Sequence record: NC_019401.1
Reading direction: 5' to 3' (one strand)
DNA length: 64,000 nt
Shown here: positions 8,357 through 9,675 of the stretch, piece by piece
How positions within the stretch are numbered: position 1 is the first letter of the stretch
Layout: each line of letters starts with the position of its first letter
Notes under the pieces: generated by a model
What the model was told of the DNA's origin: nothing
Database searches by the model: none
Seen by the model: only the letters and a program-made list of their open reading frames with translations
Position numbers and translations under genes: made by a program

Positions 8357-8779
8357 ATGAAATTAGATGTAAGAGGTTATTCTGAAGGTGGCTACTGTTT
8401 CCTGTACGATGGTAAGCCGGTTTCCATTCATGAAGCAATGGTCGCGAACGGCGGGAAGTTTTCAAAGCGTACTACTAACGCCTTGAACCGTAGAAATCTG
8501 CCTAGTGTTGAATGGCTAAAAGTGTTTGAAAAAGATGTAGCCACGTTACATACTGGCTTAGATGCTCCTGGTGCCCGTAAAGTACTGAGGGATCATTATA
8601 ACATCGATGTACTTAAACGTGACTATTATCATTTGTCAAGTTCAGAAGTATACGATCTTAAAACTGTATACAAAATGTGCAAATATAAAGTAACAGTTAA
8701 AGAACCTGCACACTCTGAGATGTACTACTTTTTCCAGTACTTGTCAAGGAAAGATGTGCATCCACTCGAAAAGAATTAA
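8357..8779 (+). CDS. hypothetical early protein
   Basis: Promoter B2, GAGAG RBS. Confidence 0.8.
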   Translation: MKLDVRGYSEGGYCFLYDGKPVSIHEAMVANGGKFSKRTTNALNRRNLPSVEWLKVFEKDVATLHTGLDAPGARKVLRDHYNIDVLKRDYYHLSSSEVYDLKTVYKMCKYKVTVKEPAHSEMYYFFQYLSRKDVHPLEKN

Positions 8780-8784
8780 TTAAA

Positions 8785-8821
8785 GAAAGGGGTTGACTTC
8801 GGTTAGCCCCTTCTGTATACT
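8785..8821 (+). promoter_or_regulatory. terminator-promoter fusion cassette A2
   Basis: GGGGTTGAC-TTCG-GTTAGCCCC; TTGACT-17-TATACT. Confidence 0.75.
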
Positions 8822-8830
8822 GTATTCATT

Positions 8831-8862
8831 GGCAGATAAAGCCGCAAGCCCATAGGGTGCAT
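8831..8862 (+). ncRNA. two-hairpin element E3
   Basis: GGC-AGATAAA-GCC, GCAA, GCCCATAGGGTGC. Confidence 0.55.
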
Positions 8863-8942
8863 AATTGTATCTATAATATTAAGAATAAAAAAAAGATAAA
8901 ATAATCCTTGCAATCAAACGATGAATAGATTAATATGTAGTT

Positions 8943-9228
8943 CTCGACACGCAATAACGCGATAACCTAAAAGAAGGAAAGCAGATATTCTATCAGGCTC
9001 ATATCCTGATAGCAGTACTAATAACCTGAGACACATAGCACACCGATAAGTCTATGTTAGGATGCATTAGCGAAAGCACATCACTGGATGAATGCATAGT
9101 ACTGGTAGAATATGCGGTATTATCTTTATAAGAGAATATATGAGATAAACTTAATGCGGCCTTAATGGGCGTGGCGTGTATCAAAAGCCACCGTTAAACG
9201 CTCCCTTAATGGGGGCGTTTTTCGTTTT
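8943..9228 (+). ncRNA. candidate 285-nt structured RNA with own promoter and terminator
   Basis: TTGCAA-17-TAATAT at 8908-8936; nested stems; ends in AAACGCTCCC/GGGGGCGTTT terminator; no plus-strand ORF of 60 aa or more. Confidence 0.65.
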
Positions 9229-9318
9229 GGATAATATACTTTTAAACGAGAAAAGTACTTGCAAAGAATGATAAAAGTAGTATACTTATCTATATCGAAA
9301 ACGAAAGAGGATTTAAAA

Positions 9319-9675
9319 ATGGTAGATATGTTCTGGAGTAGTTCGTGCGGCAGAATTGAACTTGAGTTCAAAGATCCTGAGCAGGTATTCACTATGTTTC
9401 ATAGTGGCGATTGTGAGGATTCTGTTAAGGCACAGATTCCGTACTTCCTTCCTCAATTGCAGAACATTGATCGTTCGCGTATTATTTCAGTACTAAATGA
9501 ATATTCTGGTGATTGGACAATTGGGGAGTTATTGGAACTTACACAGGAAGATCTTTACATTAAACTGTTATGGATCGCTGCTGGTGATAAACACGACGAA
9601 ATCAATATGGATGAATTGTGTGAATGGCAGAATGATTTTTTGGCAGAACGTGAACGCGAAAAACACGGCGAATGA
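9319..9675 (+). CDS. conserved phage hypothetical early protein
   Basis: HSGDC..QL..ID..L.EY..W..LLWIAAG pattern; start reassigned after cassette RBS. Confidence 0.8.
   Translation: MVDMFWSSSCGRIELEFKDPEQVFTMFHSGDCEDSVKAQIPYFLPQLQNIDRSRIISVLNEYSGDWTIGELLELTQEDLYIKLLWIAAGDKHDEINMDELCEWQNDFLAEREREKHGE

Follow-up and report, generated by a model that had tools for sequence, protein, structure and literature searches.

Annotation of phage genomes deals almost exclusively with proteins, and the earliest genes of jumbo phages are the usual place of host take-over and anti-defence functions. Several structured RNAs offer points of comparison for a non-coding gene in such a position. The pRNA of phi29 (~170 nt) is built around a three-way junction, comes from an early promoter at the genome end and shows covarying loop complementarity; GOLLD and ROOL are orphan structured RNAs of about 600-800 nt, widespread in phage and prophage DNA and recognised through their covariation; 6S RNA and CsrB/CsrC act in trans, titrating proteins by virtue of their shape. 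In the Rak2-like jumbo phage PA5oct two abundant non-coding RNAs, ncRNA001 and ncRNA002, originate from the terminal-repeat region (PMC7318152). Cronobacter phage vB_CsaM_GAP32 (GAP32) is a related Rak2-like jumbo myovirus, with the T4-like phages as distant kin (PMC7318152).

We have analysed the first 64,000 nucleotides (bases 1-64000, hereafter the window) of the GAP32 genome (genus Mimasvirus, 358,663 bp), with attention to the locus at 8943-9228. This locus lies in an unannotated gap of 540 nt between GAP32_012 (8357-8779) and GAP32_013 (9319-9675), for which the GenBank record has a hairpin at 8789-8810, a terminator at 9199-9228, and nothing else. It belongs to the left-end early region, whose counterpart in phage CBB, the closest relative of GAP32, is a 22-kb terminal repeat; at the syntenic site CBB carries three small genes, gp015-017, instead of the RNA. 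Our preferred reading, to which we assign a probability of about one half, is that the locus encodes, as a free-standing gene, a structured non-coding RNA of ~285 nt, which would represent a new family, be expressed early and act in trans by its shape, via protein binding.

The likeness of this RNA to the PA5oct ncRNAs is one of setting: all appear to be stand-alone RNAs, of about 240-450 nt, near the left end (terminal repeat) of a Rak2-like jumbo phage (PMC7318152). In sequence and structure ncRNA001 and ncRNA002 have no homology to the GAP32 RNA; a covariance model of the 153-position core of the latter (R1) finds nothing in the whole PA5oct genome, and ncRNA001 itself folds barely better than its shuffles (z -1.96). 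Homology to ncRNA001 was considered and rejected, as none was found. Furthermore, expression has been shown for the PA5oct RNAs and is predicted for that of GAP32. With the phi29 pRNA it shares a phage origin, a three-way junction and a predicted early promoter, but the phages differ, the pRNA being that of phi29-like podoviruses with protein-primed DNA and GAP32 a Rak2-like jumbo myovirus (PMC7318152), there is no Rfam match to pRNA, and the loop-tail pairing that may exist in GAP32 would form most simply within one molecule. GOLLD and ROOL are also complex, multi-branched and phage-linked, but they are much larger, widespread, and unrelated to the GAP32 RNA by Rfam search. Finally, 6S RNA and CsrB/CsrC are similar in the proposed mode of action only: neither gives an Rfam match, the long hairpin with a central bubble typical of 6S is absent, and there are 2-4 GGA motifs as opposed to the many of CsrB.

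Homologues and distribution

In a blastn search of 50,697 phage records the only isolates besides GAP32 to contain the core of the RNA were Erwinia phage Kaldavass and Xanthomonas phage XbC2, at 74-76% identity. Pattern scans of IMG/VR, the JGI metagenomes and the GTDB genomes added sequences of the Kaldavass type, namely two IMG/VR genomes (~371 kb) and five metagenome contigs; the remaining matches of these scans, which fell outside the Kaldavass clade, were rejected as chance by R1. The score of this model is 141 bits for GAP32, 184-186 bits for Kaldavass, XbC2, the two IMG/VR genomes and the four full-length metagenome contigs, and 111 bits for the one metagenome contig that is cut at its end. 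Each positive genome has a single copy of the RNA.

No credible R1 match was obtained in CBB, Hallingskeid, K64-1, 121Q, G17, PA5oct or 10 IMG/VR relatives. Weak hits in CBB, in GAP32 itself at 167 kb and in one IMG/VR relative were discarded as chance, because they are driven by a common AGTACT motif and all lie within protein-coding genes. Since there are few members, falling into two clades, and the RNA is absent from CBB and the others, the family is real but narrow and patchy. A host origin of the RNA was likewise rejected, as a blastn search of 5,426 E. coli genomes returned no similarity to it, and no extended complementarity either.

The predicted transcription unit

The features of the locus are collected in Table 1. 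The preliminary description had proposed that the RNA has its own TTGCAA-17-TAATAT promoter and a strong terminator, and both are indeed present. The promoter matches the consensus at 8 of 12 positions, and was not listed by the promoter scan because the threshold of the latter was 9/12; its -10 box is invariant in all homologues, a -35-like hexamer stays in place, and in the Kaldavass clade there is an additional TG (extended -10). Transcription is predicted to start at ~8943-8945. The terminator, besides being annotated in GenBank, was called by the terminator scan (9196-9220 plus the U tract); its position is kept between the clades, and its stem contains a compensatory change with respect to the other clade.

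Given its own promoter and terminator, the unit is predicted to be transcribed independently: the host RNA polymerase would read it from the sigma-70-type promoter soon after infection, and the intrinsic terminator would end a transcript of ~285 nt. A contig covering the entire region occurs in an RNA-labelled wastewater run, but it carries no information on transcription. The type of promoter and the position in the left-end early region, with its terminal-repeat counterpart in CBB, also suggest that the RNA, as had been proposed, is early.

Upstream of this unit there is a hairpin-plus-promoter cassette, in which the -35 box TTGACT is located inside the stem of a terminator-like hairpin and is followed by TATACT. 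The cassette occurs repeatedly in GAP32 and its relatives; of the 59 Rak2-like phage records hit by our query, nearly all, from several host genera, match the part that contains it. Its promoter could give rise to a longer, read-through form of the RNA. In metagenome contigs from two runs (X4 and X6) the place of the RNA gene is taken by 69-72 different letters, which link the cassette, at 8831, with the promoter region, at 9232; such contigs derive either from a variant that lacks the RNA or, in a related phage, from a further copy of the cassette at some other site.

Table 1. Predicted features of the RNA locus and of its upstream region in GAP32 (window coordinates).
Feature	Position	Strand	Description
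Upstream hairpin-plus-promoter cassette	8789..8821	+	TTGACT-17 nt-TATACT, 10/12 consensus match, promoter at 8793-8821
Proximal sigma-70-type promoter	8909..8937	+	-35 TTGCAA 8909-8914, 17-nt spacer, -10 TAATAT 8932-8937
5' leader	8943..8989	+	small GC hairpin 8950-8961; single-stranded, purine-rich, Shine-Dalgarno-like GAAGGAAAG 8973-8981
P1	8990..9012	+	8-bp hairpin, CTATCAGG 8990-8997 with CCTGATAG 9005-9012, 7-nt loop 8998-9004
P2	9013-9018 with 9099-9104	+	CAGUAC with GUACUG; closes the three-way-junction domain 9013..9104
P3	9025-9061	+	ACATAG 9033 with CTATGT 9052; 11-13-nt terminal loop
P4	9062-9068 with 9091-9097	+	ATGCATT 9062 / AATGCAT 9091; branches into P4a and P4b
P4a	9070-9077	+	GC-GAAA-GC, GAAA tetraloop
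P4b	9079-9090	+	CAUC/GAUG, branch of P4
Tail after P2	9105..9116	+	AUAUG 9110-9114 complementary to P1 loop CAUAU 9000-9004
Variable 3' domain	9117..9195	+	AU-rich hairpin 9120-9148 inside a short helix (9117-9120 with 9154-9157)
Two small 3' hairpins	9159-9170, 9171-9191	+	GTGGC/GCCAC in 9171-9191
Intrinsic terminator	9196..9228	+	10-bp stem (6 G-C pairs), 5-nt loop, U tract

The predicted fold

The minimum free energy of the + strand at 8943-9228 is -82.8 kcal/mol, to be compared with -63.8 +/- 4.5 kcal/mol in 200 shuffles, none of which folds as well (z -4.28); the z-score is -2.38 for the - strand of the same locus and -3.18 for the Kaldavass RNA, also folded as a single sequence against its shuffles. 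The core structure is that given by RNAalifold on MAFFT alignments, which are not fitted to structure, and was identical with 5 and with 8 sequences. All the stems that had been listed previously (P1 to P4, TTATCT/AGATAA, GTGGC/GCCAC) are found in the sequence where they had been placed; the strands of P2 were originally given as CAGTACTA at 9013 and TAGTACTG at 9097. A further, long-range stem, ATATTCTA at 8985 with TAGAATAT at 9106, is present in GAP32, but no more than 3 of the 8 positions of 8985-8992/9106-9113 pair across all 8 aligned sequences; the stem is not conserved, and for this reason we have rejected it as a feature of the family.

The comparison of the two clades shows a conserved 5' half of ~135 nt, consisting of P1 abutting a three-way junction (P2-P3-P4), and then a variable 3' domain. 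Within the Kaldavass clade the leader that precedes P1 is 90-100% identical, and its Shine-Dalgarno-like stretch reads AAAGGAG. The loop of P1, of anticodon-like and YUNR form, reads CUCAUAU in GAP32; in the other clade it is CUGAUAU, and only its third base varies. P2 begins immediately 3' of P1; P3 contains an asymmetric, invariant internal loop, AGAC (9029-9032); P4a and P4b are joined by single adenines, and the P4 arm is in itself a small three-way junction. In the 3' domain the AU-rich hairpin, TTATCT/AGATAA in GAP32, has a counterpart of different sequence at the same place in the other clade, and the helix that encloses it covaries (C-G, U-A, U-G); in the Kaldavass clade the domain has ~35 extra nucleotides and a second GAAA-capped hairpin. 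The family is thus defined by a P1 with the loop CUSAUAU, followed by a junction closed by P2, the AGAC loop of P3, the GC-GAAA-GC branch of P4, and by the promoter and terminator, and the sequences assigned to it with R1 share this definition.

Covariation in the core

Covariation was evaluated on a model-fitted alignment of six distinct sequences from the two clades, for 38 core pairs. All 226 of 226 cells of these pairs are standard pairs, and changes on both sides are observed in 8 pairs, a number reached in 0 of 500 shuffles; when the partners are slid by 1-3 columns, as a control, the number of pairs changed on both sides drops to 0-1. These double changes are distributed among P1 (2 pairs), the upper part of P3 (2 pairs) and P4 (4 pairs); P1 has one additional pair with a change on one side, and 100% of its cells are paired. 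The test does not reach P2, the base of P3 and P4a, which are invariant, nor P4b, whose changes are confined to one side. Some of the double changes fall within the Kaldavass clade and therefore represent separate events; nonetheless, with only six distinct sequences in two clades, the statistics rest on few events. Pairs of the U-G type in P1 and P4b are compatible with the + strand only, and the promoter and terminator have this orientation as well. Overall, the base-paired structure of the preliminary description is borne out by stems that are conserved, with compensatory changes, in a second clade of phages, and the predicted structure of P1, P3 and P4 is well supported.

A pseudoknot between the loop of P1 and the 3' tail is possible. 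Its four central pairs are standard in 8/8 sequences, with the tail partner located five or six bases after P2, and the variable loop base and its partner form a C-G pair in GAP32 and, among the others, six G-C pairs and one G-U pair. However, owing to the AU-repeat character of this stretch, pairing is equally good in a control displaced by three columns, and the support for the pseudoknot is consequently weak.

The invariance of P2 also has to be read with some caution, because its core is the palindrome AGTACT, which is 17-fold over-represented in the window (290 occurrences versus 17 expected). The motif is found in coding and noncoding DNA alike, and just upstream of the -35 box of many early promoters; examples are at 9014-9019, 9098-9103 and 9254-9259, the first two being inside the RNA. 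The motif may be recognised by a regulator or a DNA-modifying enzyme, and the conservation of P2 could in part be a DNA-level effect.

Non-coding status and search for known families

One may ask whether the locus is an RNA gene at all, rather than a DNA-level element (regulator sites, or an origin) or a small-protein gene that has been missed. The two AGTACT boxes, with the strong over-representation of their motif in the window, would suit the former, and the latter could be read from the GenBank record of Kaldavass, in which three small ORFs of the minus strand overlie the locus. Neither idea agrees well with the rest of the data. Compensatory double changes, and G-U pairs that suit a single strand, are what one expects from an RNA and not from a site in DNA, and a replication origin was rejected since the GC skew has no turn at the locus. 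As for a protein, no ORF of at least 12 codons is common to both clades on either strand, the substitutions between GAP32 and Kaldavass show no 3-base periodicity (14/10/8 over the three phases), and no conserved start codon follows the Shine-Dalgarno-like run of the leader; the absence of coding potential that had been noted from the GAP32 sequence thus extends to the homologues. The reading that this is not an RNA gene is largely refuted, and we consider the chance of its being correct very slim indeed.

The three Kaldavass ORFs (CDS0041-0043, L002:1358-1883), each annotated as 'hypothetical protein', are not conserved in the other members, and are probably spurious, given that no ORF is shared between the clades and that there is no periodicity.

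At gathering thresholds Rfam 15 has no match in the whole window, and at E<=10 there is nothing over the core (8990-9104) in GAP32; with the Kaldavass RNA the same permissive threshold gives weak, unrelated matches, far below the gathering thresholds and none in common with GAP32. The locus had been tentatively described as a complex non-coding RNA outside the known classes; the conserved stems, the lack of an ORF and the Infernal/Rfam results are all in agreement with that view, and point to a previously undescribed family of structured non-coding RNAs with a narrow distribution in Mimasvirus-like jumbo phages.

It is conceivable that the RNA is catalytic, as a new class of ribozyme that cleaves itself or performs another reaction. 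Phage genomes hold many small ribozymes, and the compact, junction-rich fold, in which junction and loop bases are invariant, with its GNRA tetraloop and perhaps a pseudoknot, would not be out of place among them. On the other hand, no known ribozyme family is matched even at E<=10 (hammerhead, twister, twister-sister, pistol, hatchet, HDV-like and hairpin are all absent in both clades), and it is not obvious why a unit transcribed by itself should need processing; we therefore regard a catalytic function as very improbable.

There are no tRNAs or tmRNAs in the window according to ARAGORN, the 26 tRNAs of GAP32 being all located at 271-325 kb. Among these, the one at 293273-293345 has a CUA anticodon, resembles an amber suppressor and is labelled tRNA-Pyl by ARAGORN; it occurs in GAP32 and in 6 of the 7 close relatives examined (not in the IMG/VR genome G007). 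Elsewhere in the genome, a stretch of ~900 nt without a convincing ORF (332955-333842, L218), upstream of genes for an HTH regulator and a sigma factor, has 77-79% DNA identity to Kaldavass and XbC2 and tblastn matches in several frames, with CBB keeping mainly its flanks. This stretch may encode a second large non-coding RNA or be a regulatory region.

Constraint on the RNA and independence from its neighbours

The proteins that flank the RNA in GAP32 and in XbC2 are unrelated. Among members of the Kaldavass clade identity is 89-100% in the leader and core of the RNA, as against 32-89% in those neighbouring genes that have not been swapped. A similar picture emerges at shorter distance from the GAP32-like metagenome variants, with a divergence of ~1% inside the RNA versus ~10% in the flanks: in the longest such contig there are 34 differences over 8737-9500, of which 3 are in the 286 nt of the RNA, at 8958 (leader loop), 9181 (loop of a 3' hairpin) and 9228 (the last base), and a further variant from other metagenome runs, at 9176, is also at a loop position. 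As judged from these comparisons the RNA is a module independent of the neighbouring genes; that it is more constrained than its neighbours, and persists as these are exchanged, implies a selectable function.

In the Kaldavass clade ~220 nt of additional intergenic sequence lie between the cassette and the RNA promoter (L002:1188-1410 in Kaldavass, with the same stretch in XbC2, L003); this sequence is 90-94% identical among three members and has no counterpart in GAP32. It may be another small RNA.

The relationship with the neighbouring genes also bears on the notion that the core is a riboswitch or attenuator in cis, sensing a ligand and controlling read-through of the terminator into the next gene. 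A three-way junction and a pseudoknot followed by a terminator are a common riboswitch layout; here the pseudoknot is a possibility, the terminator is strong, and the next gene is on the same strand. Riboswitches are, however, found in the 5' untranslated regions of genes of one pathway, to which they are consistently linked, and in this case the downstream genes are not homologous between the clades and each has its own promoter past the terminator, which makes control in cis unlikely. Moreover, 80-120 nt of variable domain separate the core from the terminator, and the RNAalifold alignment contains no conserved alternative or anti-terminator pairing that involves the latter. We would be surprised if the RNA turned out to work in this way.

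Mode of action

Since the invariant bases are in loops and junctions, and there is neither a conserved ORF nor a tie to a neighbouring gene, the RNA would be expected to act in trans through its three-dimensional shape. Most likely it would bind and titrate, or scaffold, a protein of the host or of the phage during host take-over. Protein binding is our best guess as the mode of action, and the pairing with mRNAs or the control of neighbouring genes appears less likely.

A search for possible partners was carried out by comparing all GAP32 ORFs with two RNA-positive and six RNA-negative genomes, one of which is too distant to serve as a negative. Among real genes only GAP32_383 (283782-284135) and GAP32_169 (101534-101833) follow the presence and absence of the RNA: they occur in GAP32, Kaldavass and XbC2, and not in CBB and four IMG/VR relatives. 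No domain was matched in either protein, and GAP32_383 is located between a peptidyl-tRNA hydrolase gene and that of a tRNA-Leu. Because only seven other genomes enter this pattern, it is to be taken as no more than a lead.

If the RNA were instead a base-pairing sRNA, its P1 loop, leader or tail would regulate host or phage mRNAs, and the terminator hairpin with its U tail would be the handle for a chaperone of the Hfq type. A free-standing unit with an intrinsic terminator and U tract is what one would look for in such an RNA, and the loop of P1 has the YUNR form, typical of fast-pairing antisense RNAs. The comparison of the clades is less favourable: the sole variable base of that loop differs between them, such that a shared target would have to co-vary, and conservation resides mostly in a compact, multi-branched fold that would be superfluous for seed pairing. 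No target emerged, the E. coli genomes offering no similarity or extended complementarity, and we judge this explanation unlikely.

A different possibility is suggested by the likeness of P1 to the anticodon stem-loop of a tRNA. P1 has a 7-nt loop of the form CU-NNN-AU (CU-NAU-AU in the family) with closing G-C pairs, and in GAP32 the segment CAGG-CUCAUAU-CCUG is identical at 14 of 15 nucleotides to the anticodon arm of an initiator-like tRNA-Met of Kaldavass, and at 12 of 15 to that of GAP32's own. P1 could then be a decoy for, or an inhibitor of, an enzyme or a defence nuclease that targets the anticodon loops of tRNAs, or it could dock on the small ribosomal subunit; in the ribosomal variant of this idea the conserved Shine-Dalgarno-like leader and the codon-like tail partner of the loop, AUG in GAP32 and AUC where the loop has GAU, would take part in the docking. 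The position of GAP32_383, which co-occurs with the RNA, next to a peptidyl-tRNA hydrolase gene and a tRNA-Leu gene could be seen in the same light. Yet the likeness was noticed post hoc, among many tRNAs; the stem of P1 has 8 bp, not 5; the final base of the loop is U in all members, and A in tRNAs; the anticodon-like triplet varies between the clades, and a structural pseudoknot would explain the loop as well; the rest of the RNA has no tRNA-like features, with no acceptor, D or T arm; and all relatives, RNA-bearing or not, have 26-32 tRNAs. On balance we find mimicry of an anticodon arm rather unlikely.

Its most specific form is more doubtful still. The pseudoknot of the dicistrovirus IGR IRES docks in the decoding site of the small subunit, and by analogy the P1/tail pseudoknot might, behind its Shine-Dalgarno-like leader, copy an initiator-tRNA-like anticodon arm on its AUG codon, either to dock in the decoding site or to act as an uncleavable bait for a defence nuclease directed at tRNA anticodons. 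If this long shot were true, an RNA that mimics anticodon and codon together would be the first of its kind from a phage.

Implications

Of the readings considered, we favour that of a trans-acting RNA that binds a protein by its shape. The narrow distribution of the family limits its general reach. Within these phages, what the locus appears to encode is a compact RNA with the hallmarks of tertiary structure (nested three-way junctions, GNRA tetraloops and a possible pseudoknot), which had been left without annotation or, in Kaldavass, mis-annotated as ORFs. It is also a clean and small target for structure determination. Should it serve host take-over as a decoy or as part of a ribonucleoprotein, the small proteins that dominate this field would be joined by a tool made of RNA.
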